IMG/VR virus record: IMGVR_UViG_3300023202_000383 | Location: 186,001 to 250,000 of that record | Direction: 5' to 3' (one strand) | Length of the DNA stretch: 64,000 bases | Shown: piece after piece, positions 11,100 to 63,323 of the stretch | Layout: each line of letters begins with the position of its first letter | Position numbering within the stretch: position 1 is the stretch's first letter | The notes under the pieces: generated by a model | Database searches by the model: none | What the model saw: only the letters and a program-made list of their open reading frames with translations | Told to the model about the DNA's origin: nothing | Program-made: the position numbers and the translations under genes

Positions 11100-11164
11100 A
11101 CGGGGATCGAACCCGCAGCCTTTCGCGTGACAAGCGAATGATCTTCCACTTGATCTTCTAGGGC
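11092..11164 (-). tRNA. tRNA-Asp(GTC)
   Basis: Stem GCCCTAG/CTAGGGC, anticodon loop TTGTCAC, TTCGATC T-loop. Confidence 0.9.
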
Positions 11165-11542
11165 TTGTTCTCTATCTCTAAAATCGCATCAATCATGTCA
11201 TCAACCATCTCGAATGGGTCGAATGATGGATCGTGTGCTTCGTCCAACCTGAATTGTATTTCGTATTCAGCCTTTACGTCTACTGGCGATTTCCGTATTG
11301 CCGATAAGTCATAAAATGGGAATTCTGGTAGATCTTTTTCATATCTCTCTTATCGAATTGATCTTAGAACACCCAGCAATCCAGTCATTGCCAGATATCA
11401 AAAAGCATCCGTACAGACTAACTGACTCATGTACAACATTTAATTGCAGGTCTAAATATATCTTGTCACGCAACAGCTTGTGTATTGCGTCGACTAACGA
11501 GTTTTCTTTAGTATATGGCATAATATTCTCGCTATATTCCAA
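11158..11542 (-). pseudogene. Frameshifted member of the DPxFxP small-protein family
   Basis: ORF 11542-11339 stops in an AGAGAGATATGA context; an overlapping frame (11349-11158, 63 codons, no early start) carries HDPSFDPFEMVDDMI. Confidence 0.45.
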
Positions 11543-12054
11543 GCGTCGCTGTCACCCCTATGGTGTGTTCCTTCCATTGGGATTTTGCAGATCTCGCATG
11601 CTTCTTTAAGGCCAACTTCTCTTCTCAGTCCCGCAGCTATCGCAAACAATGTTTTTGCATTCAAATGCCGAGACCCGAAAGGATACCATATCTTGTGGGC
11701 TCTACATACCTTGTTGAATTGATTGCGGTCGTAATCGCCCCAGCTCGCCCAGAGTCGAGCGGTTGTGTCGTACTCTTCTTTGAGTATGGCACATGCTTCG
11801 GCCAGTGATATTCCGTGTTCATCTATTTGCTCTTGAGTGATGGTTGTCAATTGGGTACAGAAATCACTAATGTTAGATCTGGTTGGGGTGACCAATATGC
11901 TTCTTTTTTCTTCAGGTCGAAGCGTTTTGACATTTATCGGGCATATCCCGATCTCTATGATGTCGCTTTCTTCCCCTCTCGGAGGCGATGTGTCCCAGCA
12001 AGTGGACTCGATGTCGACCACGATTATTTTATCTTGCTTCTTATGTCTACTCAT
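11494..12054 (-). CDS. DEDDh 3'-5' exonuclease (ERI-1/KapD-like)
   Basis: VVDIESTCW, IIEIGI, WASWGDYD, GTHHRGDSDAWNIA. Confidence 0.9.
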   Translation of the reverse strand: MSRHKKQDKIIVVDIESTCWDTSPPRGEESDIIEIGICPINVKTLRPEEKRSILVTPTRSNISDFCTQLTTITQEQIDEHGISLAEACAILKEEYDTTARLWASWGDYDRNQFNKVCRAHKIWYPFGSRHLNAKTLFAIAAGLRREVGLKEACEICKIPMEGTHHRGDSDAWNIARILCHILKKTR

Positions 12055-12075
12055 AATATCTCCTTATTGATTGAA

Positions 12076-12146
12076 TCCGCCCGGATGGAGTTGAACCAAC
12101 GTCGGACCGTTATCAGCGGTCTGCTCTACCGTTGAGCTACGGGCGG
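12076..12146 (-). tRNA. tRNA-Ile(GAT)
   Basis: Cloverleaf, anticodon loop CTGATAA. Confidence 0.9.
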
Positions 12147-12221
12147 TTAAACTTGATCTATTAACTTCTGAATTCTTTTATAGGAATTGTAACAACTCTG
12201 AAGCTAGATAGAAATAATAAA

Positions 12222-12304
12222 CACGCCGGGTAGGATTCGAACCTACAGGCCCTTTGCGGGCACGGTTTTGGAGACCGCTTGGCTCACCAATGCACTGCCG
12301 ACGT
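12222..12304 (-). tRNA. Atypical class II tRNA with CCA (Trp) anticodon
   Basis: Acceptor ACGTCGG/CCGGCGT, G73, loop CTCCAAA, long V-arm GCCC-GCAAA-GGGC, T-arm GTAGG-TTCGAAT-CCTAC; non-canonical D-arm. Confidence 0.75.
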
Positions 12305-12318
12305 ATAAGAATGGGGAA

Positions 12319-12391
12319 TGGACCTGGAGGGATTCCAACCCTCGACCTCTTCCTTGCAAGGGAAGCGTTCTCGCTACTGAACTACAGGCCC
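12319..12391 (-). tRNA. tRNA-Ala(TGC)
   Basis: G3.U70 pair, loop CTTGCAA; T-loop variant TTGGAAT. Confidence 0.88.
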
Positions 12392-12424
12392 AAAATCGCA
12401 AACCGCAATTGAAATTAAATCCAA

Positions 12425-12496
12425 TGGAGCCATTGGGATTCGAACCCAAGATTCTACCATGCCATGGTAGCGTGATCCCTGTTTCACCATAGCCCC
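12425..12496 (-). tRNA. tRNA-Ala(GGC)
   Basis: G3.U70 pair, loop ATGGCAT, TTCGAAT T-loop. Confidence 0.88.
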
Positions 12497-12548
12497 ATGT
12501 GATAGGGCTTTTTATTACGCGACGCCCCGAATTCCACAAATACCGCAT

Positions 12549-13238: not shown

Positions 13239-13247
13239 TATTTAAGT

Positions 13248-13424: not shown

Positions 13425-13429
13425 ATCAA

Positions 13430-13834: not shown

Positions 13835-13854
13835 CCATTGTGATTGTAGCAGTT

Positions 13855-14292
13855 TCAGGTACTCTTAGGCCGAATGGATCGAAGATTCTTGTATTTCTCA
13901 AAATGAGGGCTGTCTTCTGGAATGAACAAATGATCGTGTGGCTGCATGTAGCGGATCGCGAAAGCAAGCACCGGACACGTGAGCACCGACTTCCACCGGG
14001 GATTGTAAACGGCGGGGGATCCACATCCATGGTAGAACTGGCCAAGCATGAGGCCCACATCTATAAAGATCGGCTTGATCTGGTCATATAATCTGTCAAT
14101 CGGCTCGCATGGTTTGCCTTTGGCTAGCGGGTAGCTGTCGAAAAACGTGAGAAAGGTCTTCAGGTTTGTCGGGTCGGCCGGCATGCCATCTCGGTCGACG
14201 TCATGTACGGGTTCTGTACGAAGAAAAAGCTCGATTTGTTCACACAGCTCTGTCTCAATATTGGCGCAGAAATTGTTGGGGCACGTTTCTTG
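13855..14292 (-). CDS. DUF6875-like protein (recalled family)
   Basis: GLMLGQFY..C..PAVYNP.W....CP..AFAIRYMQPHD.LF; frame open from 14292, first ATG at 14184. Confidence 0.5.
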   Translation of the reverse strand, partial: QETCPNNFCANIETELCEQIELFLRTEPVHDVDRDGMPADPTNLKTFLTFFDSYPLAKGKPCEPIDRLYDQIKPIFIDVGLMLGQFYHGCGSPAVYNPRWKSVLTCPVLAFAIRYMQPHDHLFIPEDSPHFEKYKNLRSIRPKST

Positions 14293-14557
14293 TTATATCT
14301 TCAGCTGCTTCTTGTTGATAAAAATAACTTGATACTACTAAATCCCACGGGTTTCTTACGAATGCGAATTTGAAATATTCTTCCCAACACCCAATATGTT
14401 CTTTTAATTTAGACGCTGGTACATGGTGAGCATATGGCGAGTTAGGATCATTTTTTGATCGTATATCTGAATAATCATTCAGCGCATATCTAATGCTGCT
14501 ACTGCCGGTCTTAGGTATAGCAATGAATATGAATTTGTACTTGTGTGACAGCCTCAC
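14255..14557 (-). pseudogene. Truncated sulfotransferase (Sulfotransfer_2-like N-half)
   Basis: FIFIAIPKTGSSSI and FAFVRNPWDLVVSSY are present, but the ORF ends at 100 aa where GC-richer sequence starts. Confidence 0.6.
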
Positions 14558-14760: not shown

Positions 14761-14777
14761 AATATATTTGTGGAGGA

Positions 14778-15170
14778 CTATTTGGAACTACATCTCTTTG
14801 CTATTGCTTCATAATAGATTTTGGCTTTTTCATACATATCTCTTTCCAGCCAGTGCAGTCTGCAAAATACACCGAGCAGAAAGATTCTCTTAAAGTTGTT
14901 CTCCATCTCCCCGTCGTAACCATATGCGAATTTTTTCTTTTCTATATCGAACACGACTGACGAAACTGGGTCCAGCTCGGCCTCTACTCGTCCATCGGGA
15001 AGTGCTGTGAGCGTACTGTATGATACACCGCACGCCGGATCATCGACAGAAATATAAAGCTTTTTGGCTTCCGGGTTTTCTATATCATATTTTATTTTAT
15101 CATCATCAATCCAAATCAAGTTCATACCAAATGGGCCAGCGTCAGTGGATATTGTTATGCTAGTGTTCAT
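14778..15170 (-). CDS. Hypothetical, family B paralogue
   Basis: LIWIDDDKIKYDIENPEAKKLYISV. Confidence 0.7.
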   Translation of the reverse strand: MNTSITISTDAGPFGMNLIWIDDDKIKYDIENPEAKKLYISVDDPACGVSYSTLTALPDGRVEAELDPVSSVVFDIEKKKFAYGYDGEMENNFKRIFLLGVFCRLHWLERDMYEKAKIYYEAIAKRCSSK

Positions 15171-15534
15171 TATTGCTCGCTATTAATTCCAGATATTCTT
15201 TGGCACTTTTATTAAATAATTTTATGTTGTGCTTATCAAATATTATCGGAAAGTTTGTGAGGCTAGTATACACTCTGCTGTTTCTGGTCTGCGCCCATAC
15301 TCTGTTTTCAATATCTATTAAATATCCACATTCTACTAAGTAATCGAATGATTTACCAAACGATACATAAATATGGCGTGCCTTCGGATTATCAACATCG
15401 AACCTTACATTTATATTATCTAGCCATGCCAATTTTATGTCATATAAATCGCCACCAACATAGCATTTATATACGCCATTTATGGCAGTAGGTGCGCCGT
15501 CAACGTCAATCAGAAAAATATTACTCATTGCCAT
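15160..15534 (-). CDS. Hypothetical, family B paralogue
   Basis: LAWLDNINVRFDVDNPKARHIYVSF. Confidence 0.7.
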   Translation of the reverse strand: MAMSNIFLIDVDGAPTAINGVYKCYVGGDLYDIKLAWLDNINVRFDVDNPKARHIYVSFGKSFDYLVECGYLIDIENRVWAQTRNSRVYTSLTNFPIIFDKHNIKLFNKSAKEYLELIASNNEH

Positions 15535-15949
15535 AGTATTTATTCGTGTTCTTTTTGAGAAACGTTTCTGTAGTTTCTAATAGTTGCTCAAAATACTCTC
15601 TTCTGAATCCGTTTTTTGACCATTTGGTGCTTATGTCTTCCCACCCCTTAATTTGTGGTCTTACATCATGTATTGTGTGTTTATGTGTACCACCTGATTT
15701 TCTAAGCTCTCCATCATAATGGACTGCAGAGATCCGTTTGTTAATGATGTCAATTACCCAGCATATAGGCTTATGGATTTGCACACACACTAATTCAGCG
15801 TCCGGATTGTCAACGTCTTTTCTGACATATCCATTGTCATCAATCCATACTAATTCCATTTCGTTGATATATAATACCCTATTGAACAGGCTGTATTTTC
15901 TTGAACTCATTGGTATCGCCCTCGTGTCCGCAATCAGGGCAGCTACCAA
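15521..15949 (-). CDS. Hypothetical, family B paralogue
   Basis: LVWIDDNGYVRKDVDNPDAELVCVQI; likely start ATG 15910. Confidence 0.7.
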   Translation of the reverse strand: MVAALIADTRAIPMSSRKYSLFNRVLYINEMELVWIDDNGYVRKDVDNPDAELVCVQIHKPICWVIDIINKRISAVHYDGELRKSGGTHKHTIHDVRPQIKGWEDISTKWSKNGFRREYFEQLLETTETFLKKNTNKYYGNE

Positions 15950-16184
15950 TCATTTCGTTCATTGATGTGTCTGGGTGTATTTCTTTGCATGTGGCTTTTT
16001 CAGAACCACAATTTGGGCATTTGTAATATGTAGGAGTAAACTCCATATGTGTGATTGACCCGTCATCTTCGATATTCAAGCCTAGGGAATTTGCGAATTT
16101 TTTGAACCCAGGTGTAATCGATTCTGGGTCTAGCTTATTTGTTTCCTCTGACAGTACCTTATCAAGTTTATCTTTATAGTCCAT
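15879..16184 (-). CDS. Zinc-ribbon protein
   Basis: CPNCG...CPDCGH. Confidence 0.7.
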   Translation of the reverse strand: MDYKDKLDKVLSEETNKLDPESITPGFKKFANSLGLNIEDDGSITHMEFTPTYYKCPNCGSEKATCKEIHPDTSMNEMIGSCPDCGHEGDTNEFKKIQPVQ

Positions 16185-16482
16185 CGTTGTTCCCTAAACG
16201 TTTTAAAGAAAATTCAGCGTCTGCTATATATGGACCTATAGTAGCAGGATCTGACTCCCAGCCGCATATTTGCATGGCGTCTGGCCCATCGGTTATTTTG
16301 GCTGGGCCATTGTAATATTCCATGACTCTAGATGCTCTCTTATTTTCTATATCTACTACAACTATTGATGTCCAATAGTTAATTAGAACACATATAGCTT
16401 CTGAATCCGGATCATCAATGTCATGGCGGATCCGCCCATCGTCATCAACCCATACTAAACAGTTGTCCAATTTATAAAACAT
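16174..16482 (-). CDS. Hypothetical, family B paralogue
   Basis: LVWVDDDGRIRHDIDDPDSEAICVLI. Confidence 0.7.
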   Translation of the reverse strand: MFYKLDNCLVWVDDDGRIRHDIDDPDSEAICVLINYWTSIVVVDIENKRASRVMEYYNGPAKITDGPDAMQICGWESDPATIGPYIADAEFSLKRLGNNDGL

Positions 16483-16525
16483 TATTGATTGGAGGTTCGA
16501 AACTGTGCTTTGCCATATATTTGAA

Positions 16526-16796: not shown

Positions 16797-16855
16797 ATAT
16801 ATTGATTTAGTTGGTGGCTGCCTTACCAAGTCGGCCATCCGCCAAAATTCATCGA

Positions 16856-16968: not shown

Positions 16969-17442
16969 TCAATACGGACTTTTGCTATCAAATCTTTTCC
17001 TAATGTTCATTATGTAATCTATGACAGCTATTATTTTGTCGATCACTTTTTGCGGATCATAATTTGGGTCGACATAGTCTCCAAATGGGAAATCGAAGAT
17101 TGCACCGGCATTAATATCTATTATCACATGAAATTTGTTGGGGTCTCCGGTTCCGTCGTTAGTAATGTTTATATTTATTGAGCCCATTTCTGACATTATT
17201 GAAAGTCGATAAGTTTCGGCTTCTTCAAGAGCGAATTGGTCAGAGTTGTCAATTAGTTCAAAAACTGGCATTTTACTTGGTGGATACCATAAGTCCACCC
17301 TCTGGTAAAATCGATTCCTGACTTCCTTTAATATCAGCTTAGCCGTCCGCAACTTTGGTTCTCGTTTTACTCGTTTTACTGGCTTGCAGCTTCTTGACCT
17401 GCAATAACAATCAACTGGGCATTTATATGGACCAGATGGCAT
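16969..17442 (-). CDS. Hypothetical, family A (DPxF/YxP) paralogue
   Basis: DYVDPNYDPQKVIDKI; N-terminal CPVDC.C..C. Confidence 0.65.
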   Translation of the reverse strand: MPSGPYKCPVDCYCRSRSCKPVKRVKREPKLRTAKLILKEVRNRFYQRVDLWYPPSKMPVFELIDNSDQFALEEAETYRLSIMSEMGSININITNDGTGDPNKFHVIIDINAGAIFDFPFGDYVDPNYDPQKVIDKIIAVIDYIMNIRKRFDSKSPY

Positions 17443-17928: not shown

Positions 17929-18784
17929 TGATTATTATACCATATATATCGTCGCTGATCATCGTCGGATTTAAACACAATATGTAATTGGCAAGATTAG
18001 AGTTGCCGTGGACAAAATGATTGCACCTTGACAATAGTATAGAGTCCACCAATGCTTCTTTACCCATTTCATACGGGTCGCCAGCCGCATTTGCATGCGG
18101 TTCTCCGTCGTGCAGTCTTATCGCTGGCGTTGTTTGTATTCTTTTGCCGTACCTATCTGACATTCTATTTACCACAACCTGTGCATCTGTTCCGAGCAAT
18201 ATGTTGGCATCTGGATGCTTGTGCAGATACTTGTCTATTTTGCTCATATATAGATGATATGGCGGATTGCCCACATTAAGCAACTTGTTTAGGTATGGGA
18301 CACCACCATGTATCCTGCCTGGGCCTCTAATATGAACTCCAATTGTGTGACCACTTACTAAGTCACTATTAGAATCTGCTGCAGCAATAATTTCATCCCT
18401 AAATGGCAGATATTTGTTTATTATCTTGTTCGGTTTGTATCGATCTTTAGGTGGCAACAAGATTGTTGCCGGACCGTTGTATCTTTCTGGTTCTGGTATA
18501 GTAGGTCCGGTCCGTCGCATTATTCTATGCTGCGGATATGCTTCGAATATATCGATGTCATTTCTGGTATTGTTCGAGTCTAAAACATCGTTAAATGTGT
18601 GGTCTATACGATAAAAATATTGATCCCACGTATCGCCTGGTCCACCGGCGTTGTAATACTTGCTATTCCAATATGGCATTATGATAATATTATTATTGTC
18701 ACCATAAGAAAACGCGGTAACTGCTCTACTTATCACAACTCCTATGCCATTGTTGGCAGTAAGTGTAACGCGTAACTTATTCAT
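17918..18784 (-). CDS. NodZ / O-FucT-like fucosyltransferase
   Basis: TIGVHIRG, ILLGTD, ALVDSILLSRCNHFVHGNSNL GDP-fucose-binding motifs. Confidence 0.75.
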   Translation of the reverse strand: MNKLRVTLTANNGIGVVISRAVTAFSYGDNNNIIIMPYWNSKYYNAGGPGDTWDQYFYRIDHTFNDVLDSNNTRNDIDIFEAYPQHRIMRRTGPTIPEPERYNGPATILLPPKDRYKPNKIINKYLPFRDEIIAAADSNSDLVSGHTIGVHIRGPGRIHGGVPYLNKLLNVGNPPYHLYMSKIDKYLHKHPDANILLGTDAQVVVNRMSDRYGKRIQTTPAIRLHDGEPHANAAGDPYEMGKEALVDSILLSRCNHFVHGNSNLANYILCLNPTMISDDIYGIIINEF

Positions 18785-19101
18785 TGTGTTAAATTAGACA
18801 GGTATCGTGATATCATTTCTGTATCATATCTCGGTTTATAATATTTATCGATCTTTGATAATTTGATAACCCATTCGATCAGTTCCTGGGGGTTGAAATT
18901 GGGGTCTGTTATGTCATAATCTTTGCGCAGCGGGCACGCTGTCGCCCATCTTTGAACAATAGTTTCACTGTTAGATATCCTAGCGAGTTCATGCCCAATA
19001 CCAGTTGCCTTAATTCTAGTATGGTCATTTAATCTCCATACATGTGTGCATGGAAGTTGGTCTGATATAGCACACGCGATTTCTAAGTGGAATTGCTTCA
19101 T
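18781..19101 (-). CDS. Hypothetical, family A paralogue
   Basis: YDITDPNFNPQELIEWV. Confidence 0.7.
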   Translation of the reverse strand: MKQFHLEIACAISDQLPCTHVWRLNDHTRIKATGIGHELARISNSETIVQRWATACPLRKDYDITDPNFNPQELIEWVIKLSKIDKYYKPRYDTEMISRYLSNLTQ

Positions 19102-19225
19102 AATGGGGAGATTACGCTCGCCGCTTTTTGGCCATTGCGAAGTTGGCTATCCATGCCGCCTCCCCGATAACTACTGATACATATGTGCGAAGCACATAAT
19201 AATTTATGTGTCAAACATAACTTAA

Positions 19226-19311
19226 CAGCGGCTGTAGGATTCGAACCTACGTGGGGCTTGTAGCCCTGCAGCTTCAAAGGCTGCCGCGATCGTCCACTCC
19301 GCCAAGCCGCT
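19226..19311 (-). tRNA. Atypical class II tRNA with TTG (Gln) anticodon
   Basis: Acceptor AGCGGCT/AGCCGCT, G73, class II D-arm GCG-GAGTGGACGAT-CGC, loop CTTTGAA, V-arm GGGCT-ACA-AGCCC, T-arm GTAGG-TTCGAAT-CCTAC. Confidence 0.8.
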
Positions 19312-19321
19312 AGGTGCAAAA

Positions 19322-20012
19322 ATGAGCAAATTAGATAATATTCCAAAAGATAGGTTTATAAAAACATATGAATCGTCTGAATCAATAAGCGATATGCTGC
19401 TAAAAATGCGGATTAATTGCCGCTGGCGGAAACTATAAGACTCTTAAAAATAGACTCAAAATCTATGATCTTGACTACGACGAGCTTAAAAGCCGAGGAC
19501 GTAATTCAGCAAATTCTAAGCTGATTACAAATAAAGGCGTGCCACTAGATGAAATTATGGTGGAAAATTCAACATATAAAAGAAGTAGCTTAAAACATAG
19601 GATCATAAGATCTGGAATAATTCCATATAAATGCGCTATCTGTGACCAGAATTCAACATGGCGCGGCGAGAATCTTACATTAATTCTAGATCATATCAAT
19701 GGTGTTGGTAATGATCATAGAAAAGAGAATTTGAGATTCTTATGTCCAAATTGCAACAGCCAAACTCCAACATTTGCTGGTCGGAACATAGATTGGTCTG
19801 GTACAAAAAATAAGTGTGTCGATTGCAATAATATCATTACTAGAAAAGCGTTAAGATGTCCAAAATGTAATAGTATAAATAGGCGTAAAATCGAGTGGCC
19901 AGACAATTTATCAGATTTGGTTGCTGAGTCGTCTAAATTAGCGGTTGCAAAATCTCTTGGAGTATCTAATGTTGCCGTTGCGAAACGCCTAAAGTATATA
20001 AACCAAGTTTAG
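19322..20012 (+). pseudogene. HNH homing endonuclease with a +1 frameshift near 19409
   Basis: LILDHINGVGNDHRKENLRFLCPNCNSQT; the N-terminal GGNYKTLK segment is out of frame with ATG 19322; total span 691 nt = 3n+1. Confidence 0.75.
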
Positions 20013-20024
20013 CTGCCTATTACA

Positions 20025-20690
20025 CTACGGGCCAATAGTGTTAAAACTCTTACATCTGTTCAGTCTCTTGCACGGCGTGCACTTCATGCATCGTTTGTAT
20101 CCGGTCATTTCCACAGTGTGGATGAAGTCTGGGCTTTCACAAACCCATAGTTTATTTAATATCGGTTTATTAAGTTTCTTTTCTATCTTCTTCAAATAGC
20201 TTATAATGTGACCTTTGTGCGTGTTGATAAATGGCGTATATAGCGTTGGTGTGTGAGTATCTTCAAAGCTCATTAATTCCCAATGCGCTCTAAGCAGGTC
20301 TATTATGTCATTTATGTAATCTCTCGCTTCGTCGCCTCTATTGTATCCAACACAAATCTGATCGGCCTCGTGTTCCCCTGCAGCAAAAGCAGCTGCTTGT
20401 ATCCACAGTGGTGGTTGAGAAAAACCATCTTTGGGCCGCCCGTAAACACTGATTTCAGTATTTACGAATTTTACTCTTTTATCGCATATTTGAAGATCTA
20501 TATGGTAATTGTCGTCATAGATCGATTCTAGATATTTTACTACCTGCCTTTCGCACCAGGCTTTGCCCGCATTGGCAGGCGACAGATCTACATATAAAGC
20601 GATAATTTTATCGGTAGTTTCCTCTAGAAGCTTGAAGAAGCAAGCTGTTGAGTCTAGGCCACCCGATAAAAGCAGAATAGTAGTCTTCAT
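20025..20690 (-). CDS. queC: 7-cyano-7-deazaguanine synthase-like ATP pyrophosphatase
   Basis: LLSGGLDS PP-loop, TPFIN..K..I, WVCESP...CMKCTPC Zn motif; ATG 20690 directly after tRNA-Glu. Confidence 0.7.
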   Translation of the reverse strand: MKTTILLLSGGLDSTACFFKLLEETTDKIIALYVDLSPANAGKAWCERQVVKYLESIYDDNYHIDLQICDKRVKFVNTEISVYGRPKDGFSQPPLWIQAAAFAAGEHEADQICVGYNRGDEARDYINDIIDLLRAHWELMSFEDTHTPTLYTPFINTHKGHIISYLKKIEKKLNKPILNKLWVCESPDFIHTVEMTGYKRCMKCTPCKRLNRCKSFNTIGP

Positions 20691-20692
20691 AA

Positions 20693-20764
20693 TGCTCCCA
20701 AGGGGAATCGAACCCCTATTTCCTGCGTGAAAAGCAGGTGTCCTAGCCGTTAGACGATGGGAGC
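20693..20764 (-). tRNA. tRNA-Glu(TTC)
   Basis: Cloverleaf, loop TTTTCAC, TTCGATT T-loop. Confidence 0.9.
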
Positions 20765-20767
20765 ATA

Positions 20768-20880
20768 TCGCCCCGTGCATACTCAACGGGGCGTTAGTAA
20801 TAATCCAACCTCGCTAGCTGGCTGACCTGGGCAACAGGTACCTTTACAACCCTGCCGGGAACTCCAGCATCGCAAGGATA
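20768..20880 (-). ncRNA. Candidate structured RNA (imperfect rod plus hairpin) between tRNA-Phe and tRNA-Glu
   Basis: GCTGG/CCAGC, CAGG/CCTG and TCC/GGA nested stems plus CGCCCCGT/ACGGGGCG hairpin. Confidence 0.3.
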
Positions 20881-20906
20881 TGAACTTGTCAAAGATCACT
20901 TCTTAA

Positions 20907-20978
20907 TGGGTCAGACCGGGATTGAACCAGTGTCTCACGGGCTTCAACCGTGCGCTCTACCAACTGAGCTACTGACCC
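20907..20978 (-). tRNA. tRNA-Phe(GAA)
   Basis: Cloverleaf, loop TTGAAGC. Confidence 0.9.
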
Positions 20979-21036
20979 AAGACGCCCTGTGGCGTCTTAT
21001 GCGATCGCCTTGTTGGCGATTTTGCTAATATTCTCC

Positions 21037-22892: not shown

Positions 22893-25800
22893 GTGGCAGA
22901 ACTTAAGGACTTCCATAACCCATCTTTTGTGGCGTGGCCACTATTTACTGACAGAACTGCCTATAAACCATTTGGGCAGCCTGTAATTCTTGTAGTGCCC
23001 CACGTCAGGGATGAAGAAGGCCGCAAATTTGCTAACAGCCTTCCCAGGCGAGTAAGCGTATGTATAGAAGAAGGCCCCGATCGGTGCCCAGTCGTCCAAA
23101 ACCCAGGCGTTTTTTCTCCAGATTTAGATATATTCACCGTAGACCTCAATGAGAGGCAATTACTAGATCGCAAGATAGATCTAAATACTGTACAATATAT
23201 AAATAGTGACGGAGATCTGCTCCCATCAGGGACGCAATGCGACCAAGCAGACATAGACAATAATGAGTGTCGATTTAGGTACACCACCAGAACTGGTTTA
23301 GTTGATGATATATTATTCCTGAGCCATGCCGATTATTTTGATCTATCGGACATATTGTTGCCGACTGATTCTCTGCCTCCCGGCTTATATAATTTAGTTT
23401 ATAAGGTTGATTTTAATGTAAGAAAAGTCAATGAAGACACTGACACATTTGTTTGTGTTGATCCAGATAATTTCAGAATCATCAGATCAACTTTCTTGTT
23501 CAATCATCCAGGAGACGTCCTCCTGCAGATGGTTAATGGAACGCCAGCTCTTTACTTTACTGGTGAGTCTCGGTCTGATGATGAATTAATAGAATTCTAT
23601 CGTCCGTTTTCGGATATACTGCAAGATATACACGATGAACAGAGATTTATCGAAGGCATAAATCATGTTTTTGATGTTCAATTCAATCTGATACCACACC
23701 TTGGCGCTTTGCTTGGGTGGGATATACCATATTTCCCGCGTTCGGCAGATAGTTTAAGGCGCGCTTTCCTTAGAAACACTGTCAGGTTCCAGAAGCTAAA
23801 GGGCACCAATCGTGTTGTCAGAGAATTGTTCGACCTGTTCGGATTCACTATAGATATCACCAACTTGTTCTGGTCCGCTGATGGATCGTCTTATGTTGGT
23901 CCTGGCGATTCTACAAAACCTGAATTCATAATAGAGAAAAAGCAGGTTATAACAACAGAGCCAGTCTTGACAGAATACGATCAAGACGGATTCGGCAATC
24001 TAAATGTGCCGTTGCTGCGCAGGCCCGCTGAGGACTCCATAACTGTCAGGTCTTTTTTGGTTGAAGAAGGATCAGCAGCTGATGAAGAGCTCAAGAAAAT
24101 AACTGGTGCATTGTCCGATGACATAGATAAATTCAATGACGAACTTAGGTCAGATGGGTGCGGCAATAGCCCAGCACAATCCATTCCGACAACGTTTATA
24201 CCGGTCACAATACCAGACGACGTAAGCACGGCAGTAGACAGTTTAGATGATGTGGCCGATCTTGATGGAGTTGCTGGCGATTCTACGATTTTTATCGGAG
24301 AAGATGGTAAAGCATCATCAATTAGGACGTCTAATCTTTCAACCGCACCGGTGTCGCTGACTAATATCAGGTTCGATTCAAACACCAACACTTTGTGTCT
24401 TGGGTTCGCTAGATATCTAGACTTCTCTGCTACTGGCACTGTCCTATATATTCTGGTGACCTATGGTTTTAATGACATAAGACCGCCAGAACAAATGGAG
24501 AACCTACAGTCTAATAGGTTCGACATAGATATAGTCTTCAAGAACGGCCAGCTTCCAGATTCTGAGCTTCTTGAATTCTTGATCGACATGTTGTTTAAGG
24601 TCAAGGCATTCCACTCGCTTTTGCGGGTTATCGGAATATCGTTTGATGATGAAACGATCGAAACGTACAATGTAAATGATTTGTGCGTCGGTGGTGACTT
24701 CTTGCAGAGATGTGACACTGACGCGGGCCAGTTGCAGGTTCCGCAAGAAGCCATAATACCGGAAGAATGCATACTGTCCTCCGACGATCCGTGTTTCACT
24801 ATTCTTGAAGAGACATATGGATTCAGGGAACAAGATTTTACCTATAGAGATAGAGTTTTAAGAGGTCTTGAACAAGAATTCAATGCCTATAAAGCCCTAG
24901 ACCCTAGAAATTGCAGGTTTACGCCTACCGGACAAGACAGGACCAAGGAGGACATAACTCAAGAAGTAGAGATCGAAGACGGCAAGAACACTTACTTTAC
25001 CCCACAAAGAGAGTCTCTGTGTGATCTCGACGGTGATGACTTCTGTTATAGCGGAAGGGTTGCAGATCAGCTAATATTTCAGCCAACTATTCCATTCGTG
25101 GAAGTGTCCAGATTCAAGAAGTGCAGATTGAATCTGGGCGTTGGAGTATATTACACTTATCCAGCTCCAGATTGTGGGGTAAAGGTTCCGGGATTGCACT
25201 CTAGAGGAAGAAGTCTTCTGGGAAATACCCAGATAACCACACATGGTGCTACTAGAATATTCGGCAAATTCGATTCTACAGACCCTCCGAGATCTCTTTT
25301 GTATTCGGAACGTGGTGATCCAAGATTTGACAATTTGTTGGGTAACCTCACTAGATCATATGATGGGCTAATACCACAGGAATCCCGCAGCCTCCATTTC
25401 TCGGATGCATTATATTTAGAGAATTCGGTGTTCGCCAATCGACATCTGGCCATTCAGAGATTCCCTCTTGATGTTGAGAAAGACAATTTAGCATTCGCCC
25501 AACACAGATTGCCGACACTCGGCAATCTCGAAAGCGATTTCACTCATTCAAGCTACAAGCTGAAACCACATGACGATGAATTAGAATGTGCATGCGAAAT
25601 AAGATTTCCTAATAGCCTAGATGCAGAAATAACGATTGGGACCGATGGCGACGAATATCTATCGTATGATGACGAGTCATTCGCCATAGAGGCCAATGGT
25701 CTTCCAGCTGATATCTCGTCGTTAGGAACGCACGACACATCGACTTTCATAAATGCCGATGATGTCACACACAAAGTTTATTTGCAGCACGACAATGCTG

Positions 25801-27206: not shown

Positions 27207-27256
27207 TTACGGTAAATATACTTAAGATAAGTATTGTATACTAACAGGAGGTCTGA

Positions 27257-49995: not shown

Positions 49996-50138
49996 TTTAA
50001 ATCCTCTATGTGTATTATACATTATATTTGAACGAGGGGACATCGAGGCAGAAGCATCACAATTTTTGCTGAAACGTCGCAGCGCGACAAGACGCTGCAA
50101 GAAGTCTCTCACCGCGTCTCAAAGATAAGGAGAAGCAA

Positions 50139-51921: not shown

Positions 51922-52209
51922 ATGAGCAACAGCCCGATCATCGCGGAAGCTATTCTTAACGATATTATTGTAAAATGTATGTCGATCAAGGACTTGTCTA
52001 TAGACAAGAACAACGAATATGTAAGATTATCTTCTAGTCAAGGAAGCGACGCTAAAATCAACGATAACAGAATAGATATTTGCATCAAGAAGAGATTAAG
52101 ATTCGATTCTGCTGATCCATCATTTAATCCCAATAAAATATCAGATTTGATATCATCTATTGTTAGGTTAGCCGAACCATCACTGGAGACAGGAAGTGCC
52201 CAAACCTGA
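51922..52209 (+). CDS. Hypothetical, family A paralogue
   Basis: FDSADPSFNPNKISDLI. Confidence 0.7.
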   Translation: MSNSPIIAEAILNDIIVKCMSIKDLSIDKNNEYVRLSSSQGSDAKINDNRIDICIKKRLRFDSADPSFNPNKISDLISSIVRLAEPSLETGSAQT

Positions 52210-53649: not shown

Positions 53650-53943
53650 TTGGAGCAATTCCAGAATAATGCAATAAATGTTTGGGGAAACGCCTTAGTA
53701 GAAATTAAATTTATGGATGGTTTAGTCAGACTGTCCGACGATGAATACGGAATATGGTACGATATTAAGTTTGATCTATGCAATCCGAGATTTGATATGA
53801 AACAATTAGTCGATTTAATAATCGATTGGGTTGAGCGAATCGACTATCAAGTATATGCATATATGCAAGAAAGAAGAAGAATTATGATTAACACGCTCCA
53901 TAAATATGCAATCGATGAAGTCAAAAGACTGGAAGAAGTTTGA
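53650..53943 (+). CDS. Hypothetical, family A paralogue
   Basis: FDLCNPRFDMKQLVDLI. Confidence 0.65.
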   Translation: MEQFQNNAINVWGNALVEIKFMDGLVRLSDDEYGIWYDIKFDLCNPRFDMKQLVDLIIDWVERIDYQVYAYMQERRRIMINTLHKYAIDEVKRLEEV

Positions 53944-56254: not shown

Positions 56255-56572
56255 ATGAATATTAAAATCGTATTAGCAAAAATGTTGGCTGAAAAATTGA
56301 CCACGTATTTCGATTGCAATATTATAATAGATGATCAAAACCGGGCGGTAGTATCATTATGGGCACAAATAGATAATAGTGGAGATCAATTATTGCTTGC
56401 TCATGTTGGAGAAGAATATATAGACTTCCCAAGATTATTCTACAAATATGATATAAACAACCCAGAATTCGATCCTGAAAGATTTTCTGAGGTTATTGCT
56501 TCTGATATCATAAAATTAGATCTTAAATTGAGCTTCCCTATGTTGTTTTCCAGAAGAAGGACCAATCAATGA
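56255..56572 (+). CDS. Hypothetical, family A paralogue
   Basis: YDINNPEFDPERFSEVI. Confidence 0.7.
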   Translation: MNIKIVLAKMLAEKLTTYFDCNIIIDDQNRAVVSLWAQIDNSGDQLLLAHVGEEYIDFPRLFYKYDINNPEFDPERFSEVIASDIIKLDLKLSFPMLFSRRRTNQ

Positions 56573-57520: not shown

Positions 57521-59023
57521 TTACCGCTCGTAGACAAATCTTAACTTCTTGCTACCCCATACCTTCACATAGCCATTTGTTTCAGCGTATTCACGCTCTT
57601 TCATTTTCATCTTCACAGCACGCTGATAGAGCGTTTTCTTATGCATTGTCCACCCATTCTCATCAGTATACCAATAACTTGGTGGTACATCTCCGTCGGG
57701 CTTGAAATTCAACGACTTATACACAGCACCATCATGATTAAAAGTGGTATCACAATACGATATTATTAACTTGTACTTATCTGGCAGTTTTTTTAGACAC
57801 CTGCTAACAAACCACGACGCGAAATTCTTCTTCTGATAGCGAGGGTGAATACATAACCTAGATAATTCGCGGCATTCTTTCTTCTTATATCTGCCAGTCC
57901 TAATATTGTGACGTACCAACGGTGAAAAAACGCAAACAGCAATCAACTCTTCTTCAAGATAGGCACCATAACAAATTCCGCCTCGACCAGCATCGGATAG
58001 GTAATGATATTTCGAAAGAAGAAGCCTGTATTCGCTAGCTGGACAGTCATTAATTTCTACATTATTGAAATCGTATTCGACAGTATTCAGTTTAGTAATT
58101 CCGAGCCAATATTTGAGCAATTCGACCACTTTATTATAATTGTGAAATTCATGCTCCCAAATGCATTTCAATTCGTACTGATTTGGGAAGTTATTTGCGA
58201 CGTATGATGCCTTCCGTTTATCATTAGCATGCCCTCGATCTGTAGAATGCCAGTATTCGCCTTGGCATTCTATAAGGAGATCTGGTGCGTTCTGCCTAGG
58301 GATGACGCAATCAAAGCTATATGGCCCGATTTTGGTCTGTAAATCGTCTTGTTTGCTATTGTGCTCTCTGTAATAAGAAATATTTAAGTCGTCTAGGATA
58401 GAATAGAGTGTTTCTTGTATAGATGAGACCTTTGGCATATTATCTCTAGCTAGAGACAAGGACTCGCAGATTTTGGCTCTATATTCGGGATTCTCCCATG
58501 ACTTTTTAGTTGCTTCTGATATCTTACGCCTATATTCTTGATTCCCCCACGCCTCTTTGGATACCTGCCCCAAAATTTCTGTCATTTTGTCTCTGTATTT
58601 CCCATCCAACCACCTCTTTTTGCCGAGTTCTGACATCTTTTGTTTAAATTCTGGGGTAACTTTCTTGCGGTTAATCTCTGTCATTCTTTCAGCGAAATCG
58701 TCACTCTGCCTAAAAGCACTCATCCTGTCTCGTAATTCAGGATCATTCCAAATTTCTTTGCTATTGGTTACAATTTTGTTTCTATACCTATCATCCTTCC
58801 ATGCTTCTTTTGCTCCTTTCCTAGATGCTTTTCTTTTCTCTGGATCGTTTGCTACACACTTGGCGCATTCCCATGGTATTTGATTTCTTATAACCTCGGA
58901 TTTCTTGCGAATGGATTTTGTGCCCTCGCTGCCGCAATTATCACATTCAACGACTACCTTTGGCCTATGTCCAGATAGATCTATTCTATTAAATTTTTCT
59001 AGCGTCTTATTCCAATTTATCAT
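57521..59023 (-). CDS. Hef-like endonuclease (NUMOD3-like repeats + Vsr/DUF559-like + GNAT/Mom-like)
   Basis: YSFDC...LLIECQGEYWH; YHYL..AGRGG...ELSRLCIHPRYQKKNFASWFV...IISYCD..FNHDGAVYK. Confidence 0.75.
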   Translation of the reverse strand: MINWNKTLEKFNRIDLSGHRPKVVVECDNCGSEGTKSIRKKSEVIRNQIPWECAKCVANDPEKRKASRKGAKEAWKDDRYRNKIVTNSKEIWNDPELRDRMSAFRQSDDFAERMTEINRKKVTPEFKQKMSELGKKRWLDGKYRDKMTEILGQVSKEAWGNQEYRRKISEATKKSWENPEYRAKICESLSLARDNMPKVSSIQETLYSILDDLNISYYREHNSKQDDLQTKIGPYSFDCVIPRQNAPDLLIECQGEYWHSTDRGHANDKRKASYVANNFPNQYELKCIWEHEFHNYNKVVELLKYWLGITKLNTVEYDFNNVEINDCPASEYRLLLSKYHYLSDAGRGGICYGAYLEEELIAVCVFSPLVRHNIRTGRYKKKECRELSRLCIHPRYQKKNFASWFVSRCLKKLPDKYKLIISYCDTTFNHDGAVYKSLNFKPDGDVPPSYWYTDENGWTMHKKTLYQRAVKMKMKEREYAETNGYVKVWGSKKLRFVYER

Positions 59024-59239
59024 AATTTATTTTTGAGCCGTGATATGGCAATATGGTTATTGTCTTTTAAATACAATATCAGTTGTTGCGCGACAACAAA
59101 CGCTTCACAGCAAGCTAGAAATGCGTCAACACATCAAAAATAACTCATTGGATTCGCGAAGCCGTTTTGTGCCAATTGTTGCCGCCATGCTGCAGCGACA
59201 CAGCAGCGTGTGAGGGAACGTCTTTCTGGAGAACATGCT

Positions 59240-60868
59240 ATGATGACACCTGAGGAAAAGTTGGTAGCTGCACGATGTCGTTTGATGACACGTGAGCCAT
59301 GGTACGGGCATATGGCCATGATGATCACGTGGAAGAAGTCCGACATGAATTGGGTCGATGATGAAGCGGCCCGATCGATCGGCATTAAGATCGCCAGCAC
59401 CGGCGAGATTACTGCTTACTGGTATCAGGATTGGGTTGAGCGGATGTCGCTCAAGCAGATCTACGGTACTATCGAACACATGATCAATCACCTGGTTCGC
59501 CTGCACCCGGTTCGGGCTGGTGAGCATGAGAAGGCTCCGTGGAACATCGCGACCGACATGGCCGTAAATGGTTCTGCCAACAGCCCCCACATCGGATATA
59601 AGGACGAGAACGGCAAGACCGTCCTCCCTTGCTCATATGATGTGTCCAAGGGAAGCGACACCTGGACAATCCCCAACTACGACGACGCTTTGGTGTTCGC
59701 AGACAAGAAGGGGATCGGCGTCGACAATGTTAAGCCGCACGGCGACAGTCTCGTGTTCGTGCCCAATGACTGGCCTAGTGACGAATCAGCCGAATTCTAC
59801 TACGAGAAGTTGATCGAGCAATTCGGTGACGATGGCCAGCAGGGCCAGCAGGGCCAGCAGTGCGATGGTGAAGGCCAGGACCAATGCCAAACGTGCGGTG
59901 GCAGCGGGCAAGCTCCCGACGACGAAGATGGCGACGAAGACCAGCAGGGCCAAGGCCAAGGTCAGGGTCAGGATGATGACCAGCAGGGCCAGGGCCAAGG
60001 CCAAGGTCAGGGTCAGGATGATGACCAGCAGGGCCAGGGTGGTGGCGGTGGCCAACCCCAGGGCGAATGCAGCGACAGCAGCGGTGAAAGTGATGGTCAG
60101 GGAAGCGGCAGCCCGTGCCCCGATTGTCAGGGAACCGGCAAGGAAGGCGGTCAAAGCGGCGGCAACGGCCAGGCCAAGCACAACTACGGCCCATTCCAGA
60201 ATAACGCTGTCGACGACCACAGCACGTGGACACAGTCCGATATCAGCCACGACGAGGCACGGCAGCTGGTCCATGATATGGTCAAGGAAGCGACCGACAA
60301 GAGCCAGGGTCACACACCCGGTCACTTGGCACAGGCGATCGACGAACTCAAGAAACCGATCGTCCGGTGGCGTGAAATCCTGCGTCAGATCATCGGCACG
60401 CACGTTGGCAACCGTCGCAAGACGTATGCCCGACGCAACCGCCGATATGATATCTGGGGTATCAAGGGCATCAGCCATCACGCAGCCGCAACCGTGTCGG
60501 TGATCATCGACACGTCCGGATCAATCGGAACCAAGGAACTGGAACAGTTCTTCGGTGAAATCGAGGCGATCAGTTACCGTGCCAAGGTCAACGTTCTGCA
60601 GTGGGACCACGCATTCCAGGGCTTCGACCAGTACCGCCGAGGTGACTGGAAGAAGATCACTGCTAATGGACGTGGGGGCACGGATATGGCAGCCCCGGTC
60701 AAGTGGTTAGAAGAGAATGGCCAGGTCGCTGATCTGCAGATTATGCTGACCGATGGCTATTGCAATTGGCCCGCGCCACGTGAGTATCCGATGGTGTTCT
60801 GCATCACGACCGACAATACTTCGGAACCTGAGTGGGGTGTGTCGATCCGCATGAAGATCACTGAGTGA
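59240..60868 (+). CDS. Zincin-like (DUF2201-type) + vWA domain protein, MoxR partner
   Basis: EHMINH..RLH, WNIATDMAVN, SAEFYY, DDHSTW, IDTSGSI MIDAS, GRGGTD, IMLTDGY; ATG 59240. Confidence 0.88.
   Translation: MMTPEEKLVAARCRLMTREPWYGHMAMMITWKKSDMNWVDDEAARSIGIKIASTGEITAYWYQDWVERMSLKQIYGTIEHMINHLVRLHPVRAGEHEKAPWNIATDMAVNGSANSPHIGYKDENGKTVLPCSYDVSKGSDTWTIPNYDDALVFADKKGIGVDNVKPHGDSLVFVPNDWPSDESAEFYYEKLIEQFGDDGQQGQQGQQCDGEGQDQCQTCGGSGQAPDDEDGDEDQQGQGQGQGQDDDQQGQGQGQGQGQDDDQQGQGGGGGQPQGECSDSSGESDGQGSGSPCPDCQGTGKEGGQSGGNGQAKHNYGPFQNNAVDDHSTWTQSDISHDEARQLVHDMVKEATDKSQGHTPGHLAQAIDELKKPIVRWREILRQIIGTHVGNRRKTYARRNRRYDIWGIKGISHHAAATVSVIIDTSGSIGTKELEQFFGEIEAISYRAKVNVLQWDHAFQGFDQYRRGDWKKITANGRGGTDMAAPVKWLEENGQVADLQIMLTDGYCNWPAPREYPMVFCITTDNTSEPEWGVSIRMKITE
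59939..60040 (+). repeat. Tandem GQ/DDDQQGQGQ coding repeats
   Basis: gaccagcagggcc...ggtcagggtcaggatgat units occur 2-3 times. Confidence 0.85.
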
Positions 60869-60910
60869 TATCCATGTGATGACCGCAGCCATGTCGGTCA
60901 AATATATTTC

Positions 60911-62428
60911 ATGATCGATTGGGAAGCAAGCAAAGCTGAGTTCGGAACCACCATGGGTCTAAAAGGCAATAGACCCATGGTGGTTGTTTTATGTGACAAG
61001 TGCAAGTCTAAAGGATCTATTCGGATTCGCAACAAATCTCTGATCAAAAAGACTGGCGACCGCACATGGCTGTGTAGATCATGCGTGAATAACCAACCTA
61101 ACAAGATAGCAAAACTTAAGAATGCTTCTAAAAAATTATGGGAAAATGATAAGTATAGATCAAAAAATTTAAGCTCAGTCAGAAGTGCAGAAAATCGCAA
61201 AAAGCTTAGCGACAATTGGTATAAAAATATGAAATCAATTGTCGCCAGTGACGAATATAAATCAAAGCAAAGAAAATCATCAATCAAATCATGGCGTGAT
61301 AGTAAGTATGCAAGCAAGATTATCAAGTCATCAACAGAGATGTGGAATAATGCTTCTTTACGTGACAAGATGTTGTCATCTAGAAGAACTGATAAATATA
61401 GAGAGAATCAGCGTATAAAGGCAATAGAACGGTGGCAAGACCCTAATTATATAAAGAAGCAGGACTCTGCAAAAGCTAGAGCGGTTAGATCACCAGAGAA
61501 CTTGGCGAAATTGCGAGCCAACCAGAAAAAAGTGTCATCAATACAAAATATGTTGTATTCAATCCTCGATGATTTAGAAGTTAAATATTATAGAGAATAC
61601 AATGATAAAATAGATGATCACGAGGTCAAGATTGGTCCATATAACTTCGACTGTTTGGTGCCACGTGACAACAAGCCAGACTTGCTAATAGAATGTCAGG
61701 GCGAATACTGGCATTCTATTAGAGAAGGCAGCGATAAAGCTAAAGCATCATATATATCAAACAACCACAGCGATAAGTATGAGCTTAAATATATATGGGA
61801 GCATGAATTTCATAATAAGAATAGAGTTGTTGAGCTTGTTAAATATTGGTTAGGCATTGCCGCGATTGACTCAATAGAATTCGATTTTGATTCAGTTGAG
61901 ATAAGAAAATGTCCACCAAAAGATTATAAACTTTTGCTTGGCAAATATCATTATCTTCCAACAGCAGGTCGCGGTGGCATCGCTTTTGGTGCATATTTGG
62001 AGTCCGGGTTAATAGCTGTATGTATTTTTTCTCCGATGCCTCGGCAAAACATGCCATATAATAATAAATCGCATAGAGAATTGTCTAGGTTATGTATTCA
62101 CCCTCGCTACCAGAAGAAGAATTTTGCGTCGTGGTTTGTGTCGCGGTGTATCAAATTGCTACCGACAAAATACAAAACAATAATATCATATTGTGATACT
62201 ACATTCAACCATGATGGGGCGGTCTATAAAGCATGCAATTTCAAATTGGATGGTGAAGTTAAGCCAGATTATTGGTATGCTAGCAAAAGCGGCTGGATTA
62301 TGCATAAAAGAACAATGTATGGGCATGCAACAAAGATGAAGAAAAATGAATCCGATTATGCCAAAGAGATGGGCTACAAGAAAATATGGGGCAGCAAGAA
62401 ATTAAGATTTGTTTTTGACAGATCATGA
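60911..62428 (+). CDS. Hef-like endonuclease, close paralogue of 57521..59023
   Basis: Same domain order; YNFDC...LLIECQGEYWH; ELSRLCIHPRYQKKNFASWFV identical. Confidence 0.75.
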   Translation: MIDWEASKAEFGTTMGLKGNRPMVVVLCDKCKSKGSIRIRNKSLIKKTGDRTWLCRSCVNNQPNKIAKLKNASKKLWENDKYRSKNLSSVRSAENRKKLSDNWYKNMKSIVASDEYKSKQRKSSIKSWRDSKYASKIIKSSTEMWNNASLRDKMLSSRRTDKYRENQRIKAIERWQDPNYIKKQDSAKARAVRSPENLAKLRANQKKVSSIQNMLYSILDDLEVKYYREYNDKIDDHEVKIGPYNFDCLVPRDNKPDLLIECQGEYWHSIREGSDKAKASYISNNHSDKYELKYIWEHEFHNKNRVVELVKYWLGIAAIDSIEFDFDSVEIRKCPPKDYKLLLGKYHYLPTAGRGGIAFGAYLESGLIAVCIFSPMPRQNMPYNNKSHRELSRLCIHPRYQKKNFASWFVSRCIKLLPTKYKTIISYCDTTFNHDGAVYKACNFKLDGEVKPDYWYASKSGWIMHKRTMYGHATKMKKNESDYAKEMGYKKIWGSKKLRFVFDRS

Positions 62429-62508
62429 TTTCTTGCTGCAACACGCTGTGTCACAGCAAAGTAAGGCCAGAGGAAAAGAGTGATGATTGATTACCCCGAA
62501 GGAGAGAA

Positions 62509-62895
62509 ATGAAACTTAATAAACTAATTACCGAAAGTCGCCTACCAAAAGTAGGCATTTTCTGGATAATTGGCGGTGATGTGATCAGCTTCCTAGAAGA
62601 AGCCAGAGATGTGTCTAGCATTAGTGGATTTAAGGATGCTACACATGATCACCACACAATGTGGGATAAAGTTGTGACCTCTTATCCTAAATTCAGAAAT
62701 ATGGAATATTATGAAGTCCCCAGAGGCAGAGTCCTGTTTGCTGGTCCTCGCGAACGATATGAAATTATAACGAGCAAGAAGATAGCCGAAAACGGCAAGT
62801 ATATTAGAAAAATCATGCGAGAATTCTCTCTGCCGATTTCTAAAACAGCGATTGTGATGGATGAGCACTACGAAATAGAACCTGATTTAGACTAG
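62509..62895 (+). CDS. Hypothetical protein
   Basis: AGGAG RBS; VGIFW...PRGRV...DEHY. Confidence 0.7.
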   Translation: MKLNKLITESRLPKVGIFWIIGGDVISFLEEARDVSSISGFKDATHDHHTMWDKVVTSYPKFRNMEYYEVPRGRVLFAGPRERYEIITSKKIAENGKYIRKIMREFSLPISKTAIVMDEHYEIEPDLD

Positions 62896-62924
62896 CCTTC
62901 AGAGAGCAAGCTGACGCCCGGAGA

Positions 62925-63323
62925 ATGAAGACTCCAGAGAACCATGGGGCCGGATCGGCAATGGTCCGGCCCTGTGTGTTTAACGAAATGACATACTGCA
63001 ATAGAGAATGCTTCCAGTTCCTCATAACCCATCGTGTCTATGAATCGCTTGTATGCAGATATAATTGGTTTATAAAACATTCCACAGTGAATTTTGATGG
63101 TGAGAAATGTGATAGATTCGATGTTTATATGGGCCTAGATGTCGGTGTAGTCAGAATAACGAGAAATAAAGTATCGATAAATGGCATAACAGACCAATAT
63201 GATATAAGCGATCCAAAATTTAACCCAGATAATTTTGCCGCAGCTATCATACATAACGTCGTAGAGCAACGATGCCGCCGGTTGAGACTATCAGATGGCT
63301 TGGCACACAACCTTTACGCGTGA
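62925..63323 (+). CDS. Hypothetical, family A paralogue
   Basis: YDISDPKFNPDNFAAAI. Confidence 0.7.
   Translation: MKTPENHGAGSAMVRPCVFNEMTYCNRECFQFLITHRVYESLVCRYNWFIKHSTVNFDGEKCDRFDVYMGLDVGVVRITRNKVSINGITDQYDISDPKFNPDNFAAAIIHNVVEQRCRRLRLSDGLAHNLYA

Follow-up and report, generated by a model that had tools for sequence, protein, structure and literature searches.

Proteins of the YjbR/MmcQ (PF04237), DUF5655 and CyaY/frataxin families are about 100 amino acids (aa) long and share a topology in which an N-terminal helix is followed by an antiparallel sheet and a C-terminal helix. The C-terminal domain of phage T4 MotA, which is of similar size and fold class, belongs to a single-copy, two-domain activator with a basic DNA-binding face. 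YjbR has been described as having both a CyaY-like fold and the double-wing fold of the MotA C-terminal domain (PMC7641849). The small acidic Neisseria DNA mimic DMP12 (PDB 3w1o, PF16779) has five helices and four strands and was described as a novel fold (PMC3643605). A further point of reference is the small-protein expansions of jumbo phages, in which many dispersed or tandem, fast-diverging paralogues occupy accessory regions. The subject here is a family of small proteins with the C-terminal motif [YF]D..[DN]P.F[DN]P, nine copies of which lie in a stretch of 64,000 nucleotides (the window, meaning the whole stretch analysed) corresponding to bases 186001-250000 of the 256,507 bp (256.5 kb) IMG/VR virus record IMGVR_UViG_3300023202_000383, whose source is an uncultivated jumbo, myovirus-like phage. 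The family is similar in length to YjbR/MmcQ, DUF5655 and CyaY/frataxin and, as modelled, may share their topology, and like the jumbo-phage expansions it consists of many dispersed or tandem, fast-diverging copies in accessory regions. Unlike MotA, it is multi-copy, mostly single-domain and mostly acidic, and it has no sequence similarity to that activator.

The nine open reading frames (ORFs) are genuine paralogues of an undescribed family detected in only a few large phages, all of them uncultivated. An earlier, sequence-only reading had listed the motif in nine copies, and it is indeed present in all of them: the eight intact ORFs translate exactly to the motifs quoted, and a six-frame scan places the ninth, HDPSFDP, on the minus strand, where a frame of 63 residues between two stop codons covers 11161-11349. 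The description of the ORFs as small also held, the lengths being 95-157 aa (78-157 aa under another choice of start codons). Nine is the correct number of copies for the window, and at least two others lie elsewhere in the genome. Over every frame of 40 aa or more in the 256.5 kb genome, the core motif [DN]P.[FY][DNE]P was counted 13 times, compared with a mean of 0.54 and a maximum of 4 in residue shuffles of the same frames. The third positions of the motif codons vary among copies (GAC/GAT, CCA/CCC/CCG/CCT, TTT/TTC), and since synonymous sites vary, this is a protein motif under selection on the protein rather than a DNA repeat or element. The polar positions are D or N, and occasionally H or E.

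Similarity extends beyond the motif. Leave-one-out hidden Markov models (HMMs), in which each member is scored by a profile built without it, recover seven of the eight intact members with E values of 3e-8 to 0.014, and several pairs of members can be aligned collinearly by BLAST over 70-120 residues. When the leave-one-out models were restricted to the pre-motif parts of the window paralogues alone, none was recovered, and a signal appeared only with external sequences. When 185 small predicted proteins of the window genome were ranked by a pre-motif-only profile of external members, the truncated family members among them came out high (Mann-Whitney p = 1.2e-4), the ranks being 1, 2, 6, 22, 26, 29, 31, 37, 38 and 135. 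Furthermore, an alignment of 36 sequences shows three fully hydrophobic positions in the N-terminal helix, in a periodic pattern, together with a hairpin Asp in 20 of 34 sequences and a helix Lys or Arg in 24 of 33. Column identity outside the motif is about 11-15%, and 11% across the 36 sequences. As judged from sequence, most members share the whole domain, with a homology outside the motif that is weak but real; for the members at 16969, 36011 and 53650 (members are named here by their lowest window coordinate), detectable similarity is confined to the hairpin, motif and helix region. The sequence-only reading had named, as grounds for abandoning the family, an absence of homology outside the motif together with differing folds. 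Most of this was not borne out, as weak homology was found; the reduced fold of 53650 goes some way towards it.

That the proteins belong to no known family, none having been recognised in the sequence-only reading, is supported by the lack of any shared match in Pfam, PHROGs or PADLOC. Scans with single members and with the whole alignment gave only scattered matches of one member each (Tad8, DUF3669 and various PHROGs). In a PHROG search with 36 members no PHROG was matched by more than one member, the best E value being 0.013, and a PADLOC scan gave no match. The Pfam model of YjbR/MmcQ (PF04237, cut-off 30.1 bits) has no match in the genome at E values up to 10 and none among 25 members at E values up to 5. 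The DUF5655 model (PF18899, cut-off 24 bits) likewise has no match at E values up to 10, leaving only a fold resemblance at a template modelling (TM) score of 0.52-0.63. The motif DP.FDP was not linked to YjbR, DUF5655 or CyaY by any search made.

A profile search of 1.84 billion representative proteins returned two groups of relatives, small proteins of 93-116 aa and proteins of 215-225 aa whose C-terminal half is the family domain. In both groups the best-matched stretch covers about 60-80% of the 114-position profile, and family proteins are called as genes in independent assemblies. Eight members stand in tandem on a 6.1-kb contig (L012) that is unrelated to the window phage, and two further contigs carry two copies each (L007 and L015). 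A scan of IMG/VR with a degenerate DNA pattern for YD[hydrophobic].DP.F[DN]P led to the 234-kb record of a distantly related phage (G001), 89% complete, with at least 15 dispersed matches and a tail protein 36% identical to that of the window genome. Because the pattern covers only part of the family, the scan counts are lower bounds: 17 loci on viral contigs, of which one is genuine (L029); 107 loci in metagenomes, genuine only on the G001 contig, at L194 and possibly at L226; and 72 loci in 185,579 prokaryote genomes, none of them genuine. No meaningful match came from tblastn of three members with 50,697 GenBank phage records, and in a word-index protein search the paralogue alignment retrieved nothing beyond the proteins of the window itself. 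The idea of a lineage-specific expansion therefore stands in part: the family is expanded in this phage genome, but "lineage-specific" is too narrow for a family that is also multi-copy in G001 and L012.

Two variations in architecture were seen among these relatives. In some G001 proteins (L043, L041:806-1162, L049 and L042) the strand, motif and helix lie at the very N terminus and are followed by about 100 other residues, an arrangement that may reflect circular permutation or domain shuffling. The two-domain relative of 215-225 aa lies directly upstream of, and overlaps, a gene for an NAD-dependent DNA ligase in two of three contexts (L009:9555-12129, L010 and L011; the context of P0013). 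This link is without a counterpart in the window genome, because the genome record has no NAD-dependent DNA ligase.

An AlphaFold2 model of 18781, computed from a 25-sequence family alignment, has a predicted local distance difference test (pLDDT) score of 80.4 and a predicted TM score of 0.69, with the order helix, five strands, motif, helix. The N-terminal helix spans residues 4-15 and the strands residues 19-24, 27-32, 38-42, 46-49 and 58-61; the motif occupies residues 62-71, and C-terminal helices are predicted at 71-87 and 94-105. Confidence in the model peaks over the motif region (pLDDT 94-95), which forms the transition from the last strand to the C-terminal helix; this helix starts at P71 with N70 before it, as N1 and N-cap residues respectively. 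The model of 53650, for which 36 sequences were used, has a pLDDT of 82.6 and contains two strands (25-30 and 35-40) and a single 47-residue helix (50-96). A helix directly after the motif is predicted in both models, as the sequence-only reading had stated, and the module of hairpin, motif and helix is common to every member.

An exhaustive VIA search placed the 18781 fold near frataxin/CyaY/Nqo15, YjbR, DR2400, the MotA C-terminal domain, PsiB, type III secretion chaperones and Mediator Med17, at Z scores of 5-6.9, those of the closest solved folds (frataxin/CyaY, YjbR, DR2400, MotA and PsiB) being 5.6-6.9. An Atlas search gave TM scores of 0.53-0.59 to clusters of YjbR, TfoX_N and DUF5655. 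The same three neighbours were obtained with an ESM Atlas model of 18781 predicted from the single sequence. For YjbR the scores are Z 6.5 to 2fki and 5.6 to 2a1v and TM 0.53-0.60 to Atlas clusters, below a level that would be distinctive; for the MotA C-terminal domain the Foldseek TM score is 0.47. In BFVD the closest models, weakly matched (E about 0.01-0.07), belong to unnamed proteins of phages 201phi2-1, EL, PaBG and G. From the jumbo-phage expansions that it otherwise recalls, the family is set apart by the weakness of these matches, by the lack of a PHROG matched by more than one member and by the lack of a detectable relative in any cultured phage. Given the published description of the YjbR fold (PMC7641849), the VIA and Atlas matches form one fold class, and because their scores lie in a commonly seen range they indicate a fold class only and not a family assignment. 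On these models the class is probably a two-layer alpha/beta sandwich like that of CyaY, YjbR and the MotA C-terminal domain. The family, though undescribed, is of a familiar kind, in that it consists of small accessory proteins expanded in large phages and probably built on a fold class already known; present evidence points to a new family, not to a new mechanism.

What does the motif do? The reading favoured here, which is put at an even chance, is that these are true paralogues in which the motif is mainly a structural keystone, and that they have diversified into non-enzymatic binders with targets of their own. The shared module is a beta-hairpin followed by the motif [YF]D..[DN]P.F[DN]P and an amphipathic helix, and in most members it would close a two-layer sandwich of an N-terminal helix, about five antiparallel strands and a C-terminal helix. 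The segment [DN]P.F[DN]P may form two consecutive Asx-Pro turns that fasten the C-terminal helix to the last strand; its second [DN]-P would supply the N-cap and N1 residues of this helix, and the aromatic residue of the motif would pack into the core. Asp and Asn are preferred at the N-cap and Pro at N1 of helices, and the Asx-Pro turn is a classical local structure signal. Such a keystone role would explain why the motif is kept while the rest drifts to the low column identity given above, and the D/N/H/E substitutions at the polar positions fit capping propensities, which favours the structural reading. The conserved binding surface that the sequence-only reading had proposed is the less favoured view, as a position at the strand-helix junction, at N-cap and N1, fits a structural role at least as well as a binding one.

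The isoelectric points (pI) of 25 members range from 4.1 to 9.7, with 16 below 6 and the other nine neutral or basic. Since surfaces and net charge differ among copies, the proteins most likely bind targets that differ from copy to copy. The most economical view is of a constant scaffold with diversifying surfaces, and the copies would act as dispensable accessory genes in host takeover, counter-defence or regulation. Host takeover or counter-defence, which had been proposed at the outset, is a plausible candidate role. Nothing points to an enzyme, and the neighbouring genes that were scanned contain no Pfam domains.

A number of observations weigh against the favoured reading, or against the fold on which it leans. 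The 53650 model is without most of the sandwich; it has no confident N-terminal helix, and its first 20 residues have a pLDDT of 56-62. An ESM Atlas model of 56255 has neighbours different from those of 18781, and a Foldseek search of the PDB with the 18781 model found nothing below E = 0.19. The fold matches as a whole are middling, with Z scores below 8, a range common for unrelated proteins, and both AlphaFold models rest on alignments of the family itself. Furthermore, the Asp at position -3, the [DN] residues at positions 0 and +4 and the Lys or Arg 12 residues into the helix could equally constitute a functional patch or a metal site.

The alternative that survives best, unlikely as it is, takes the motif for a docking site that binds one common hub protein of host or phage, with the variable parts bringing cargo or activities. 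It would account for the motif being the only strongly conserved polar feature across 36 sequences with 11% column identity, and the occurrence of the module at the N terminus of otherwise different, longer proteins in G001 is what would be expected of a portable module; in addition, one member has its motif unit triplicated by a perfect 42-nt tandem repeat. Against this, all-against-all BLAST detected no recurrent neighbour or partner family beside the members. The location at a strand-helix junction, the N-cap/N1 geometry and the top model confidence are typical of a folded core element and not of a linear docking peptide, and the substitutions at the polar positions follow capping propensities. 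Were the turn and helix nonetheless a portable unit that docks onto one hub protein of phage or host, the paralogues, some 10-20 in each genome, would amount to a new adaptor or inhibitor system in a clade of jumbo phages that are uncultivated, for example a class of counter-defence proteins on a CyaY/YjbR-like scaffold, a prospect that is equally doubtful.

Rather improbable, too, is that the family is an arsenal of anti-defence or immunity-like inhibitors, DNA mimics included, diversifying in an arms race. Small and mostly acidic proteins that have diverged extremely and lie in many copies in accessory regions are in keeping with it, the tandem arrays recall poly-immunity loci, and PsiB, a RecA inhibitor, is among the fold neighbours. 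DMP12 is the only PDB sequence near the family profile, and its match is nearly full length and includes the turn and helix, but at E = 0.13 in the reverse profile search it is not significant; its Pfam model (PF16779, cut-off 27 bits) finds nothing in the genome at E values up to 10, and the protein lies outside the top 50 structural matches. The uniformly acidic surface of the DMP12 type is not seen here either, as the charge of the members is not consistently negative. Tad8, a Thoeris inhibitor (PF25189, cut-off 27 bits), is matched by 53650 only, at 15.6 bits and E = 0.013, with no match for the other 24 proteins scanned, and the empty PADLOC scan also speaks against known defence-related proteins. 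In addition, this explanation overlaps the functional part of the favoured reading, from which it differs only in naming the class of target.

Lower still is the probability that the copies are double-wing DNA-binding regulators of the MotA C-terminal or YjbR type, a battery of phage transcription factors each with its own sites. The fold neighbours include the MotA C-terminal domain (Z 5.7-6.0, root-mean-square deviation 2.7-2.8 over 77 residues, 14% identity) and YjbR (Z 6.5), the Atlas search returns YjbR together with TfoX_N, and MotA is itself a phage protein. However, the YjbR and DUF5655 models match nothing in the genome, the 25 members scanned have no Pfam match bar the scattered single ones, and the pI values below 6 in most members, down to 4.1, are unfavourable for binding DNA. 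The folds of frataxin, PsiB, Mediator and the type III chaperones reach equally good scores, and the fold is thus not specific to DNA binding.

An artefact, in which the motif recurs by chance or as a DNA repeat in unrelated or non-coding ORFs, has next to no chance of being right: the pre-motif regions of the window paralogues alone do give no significant leave-one-out scores, and the decapeptide pattern does occur in unrelated large proteins on viral and cellular contigs, but every copy is a small ORF that carries the motif in its final third and shows one common order of secondary structure, external relatives match across most of the domain, the genes are called in independent assemblies, and 13 occurrences against 0.54 expected, with variable synonymous sites, led to its rejection.

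The unrelated carriers of the pattern are of several kinds. YDL.DP.FNP was found in unrelated proteins on the IMG/VR contigs L019, L021, L025, L026, L028 and L031-L034. Those on phage contigs are about 1150-1400 aa long (GTYDLADP.FNP) and those on giant-virus contigs about 1300-1500 aa (AIYDLDDPDFNPYFY); these motif copies in large proteins have no helix-like segment after the motif. A eukaryotic TACC-like repeat protein (P0015) carries DDPNFNPF.

Large phages hold many small genes annotated without a function, and paralogous expansions are good places to look for functions in host manipulation and counter-defence. The family described here is cleanly defined by its motif, its predicted fold and about 40 sequences, is absent from current family libraries, and has undergone independent multiplication in a number of uncultivated phages. 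Registration as a new domain family would be possible, and the proteins, which are small and probably soluble, lend themselves to structure determination and to screens for binding or anti-defence activity.

Of the intact members in the window, the first two lie on the minus strand and the other six on the plus strand. The member at 16969-17442 encodes 157 aa with a Cys-rich, basic N-terminal extension and the motif YVDPNYDP (leave-one-out E = 0.014; 66.6 bits with the family profile). The AlphaFold target at 18781-19101 encodes 106 aa with the motif YDITDPNFNP (E = 2.8e-8), just downstream of a tRNA-Gln gene (19225-19312); an ORF at 19098-19346 is probably spurious, because it covers that tRNA gene. 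At 32984-33331, 115 aa are encoded from a TTG codon (motif YSIEDPSFDP, E = 1.8e-5), and a product of 106 aa from ATG 33011, as in the database protein P0006, is more likely; this member gives near full-length BLAST alignments with external members. The ORF at 36011-36331 (105-106 aa, motif YILEDPNFEP) has a stop codon that overlaps the start of an intein-containing helicase gene (36328-38415). Its leave-one-out score is weak (E = 0.83), and its 55.9 bits against the A3 profile follow by construction, as 36011 was included in that profile.

The remaining intact members lie towards the right end of the window. That at 51922-52209 (95 aa, motif FDSADPSFNP, E = 8.9e-6) aligns over 74 aa with the member at genome position 136126, and that at 53650-53943 is a reduced member of 97 aa with a TTG start and the motif FDLCNPRFDM (E = 0.0086). 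The member at 56255-56572 (105 aa, motif YDINNPEFDP, E = 4.7e-4) aligns with members of the L012 array over 63-86 aa. Finally, 62925-63323 encodes 132 aa from an ATG with the motif YDISDPKFNP (E = 1.3e-4), for which database gene callers took a 78 aa form from GTG 63087 (P0010).

The ninth copy, at 11158-11542 on the minus strand, is split, and the frameshift ascribed to it is real. The N-terminal part (11339-11542, minus, 60-67 aa, with a probable ATG at 11521) shows the family pattern of N-terminal helix and central hairpin and ends at a TGA. The part bearing the motif HDPSFDP continues in the +1 frame from 11349 to 11158 (HMM E = 1.8e-4 for this C-terminal piece), its last codons overlapping a tRNA-Asp gene (11092-11164). 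The switch of frame is confined to 11342-11349. Four assemblies made from different samples agree exactly in this sequence, and the frameshift therefore belongs to the phage population and did not arise in assembly. The copy is either a pseudogene or a two-part gene.

Two further members lie outside the window, at genome positions 121570-121881 and 136126-136473. The latter contains a perfect 42-nt tandem triplication (L002:1294-1421; genome 136293-136420) that yields three copies of the 14-residue motif unit IEFDPCDPDFDPIR, and the complete identity of the repeat copies (100%) suggests that the triplication is recent.

The IMG/VR record has a GC content of 41%, is classed as a provirus and has an estimated completeness of about 70%; as it is incomplete, the family copy numbers are lower bounds. 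The window sequence is also found on contigs of 301 kb and 332 kb from other metagenome assemblies. No match was obtained by megablast, or by tblastn of the tail protein, against the 50,697 phage records, and no cultured phage is close. The 1437-aa tail protein contains a P2-I-type tail domain (Tail_P2_I) and lies in the region 22893-32386, in which it is followed by genes for a glycosyltransferase (28907-30730) and a GDP-mannose 4,6-dehydratase (31376-32386, minus). Sugar-modification genes thus adjoin tail genes there, and sugar-nucleotide and glycosyltransferase genes are present in the genome.

The genome has 35 tRNA genes in two clusters, one in the window (10366-12497 and 19225-20979, minus; nine genes) and one at genome positions 129258-154108. 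Four of the 11 family members fall in the two tRNA regions, which is only a mild enrichment, and three abut a tRNA gene: the split copy next to tRNA-Asp, 18781 next to tRNA-Gln and the genome 136126 member next to tRNA-Gly. ARAGORN also predicts a tRNA with the anticodon tta (reading UAA) at genome positions 132690-132764, on the strand opposite to its neighbours.

Eleven paralogues of a Mom-like/HNH homing endonuclease were found in the genome, four of them in the window (4439-5992, 48334-50112, 57521-59023 and 60911-62428), and a separate HNH endonuclease lies at 59210-60868; several of these genes are within 0.5-2 kb of family members. The DNA helicase gene at 36328-38415 has a LAGLIDADG intein-like insert at about residues 230-409, and tblastn matches to intein-containing polymerases of other phages fall on the insert-bearing part of this helicase. 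Other small paralogue groups were detected by BLAST as well, one consisting of three neighbouring genes of 102-142 aa at 14778-16482 (genome 200778-202482) and another of five members of about 100-212 aa that are scattered over the genome, with a copy in the window at 14255-14557.

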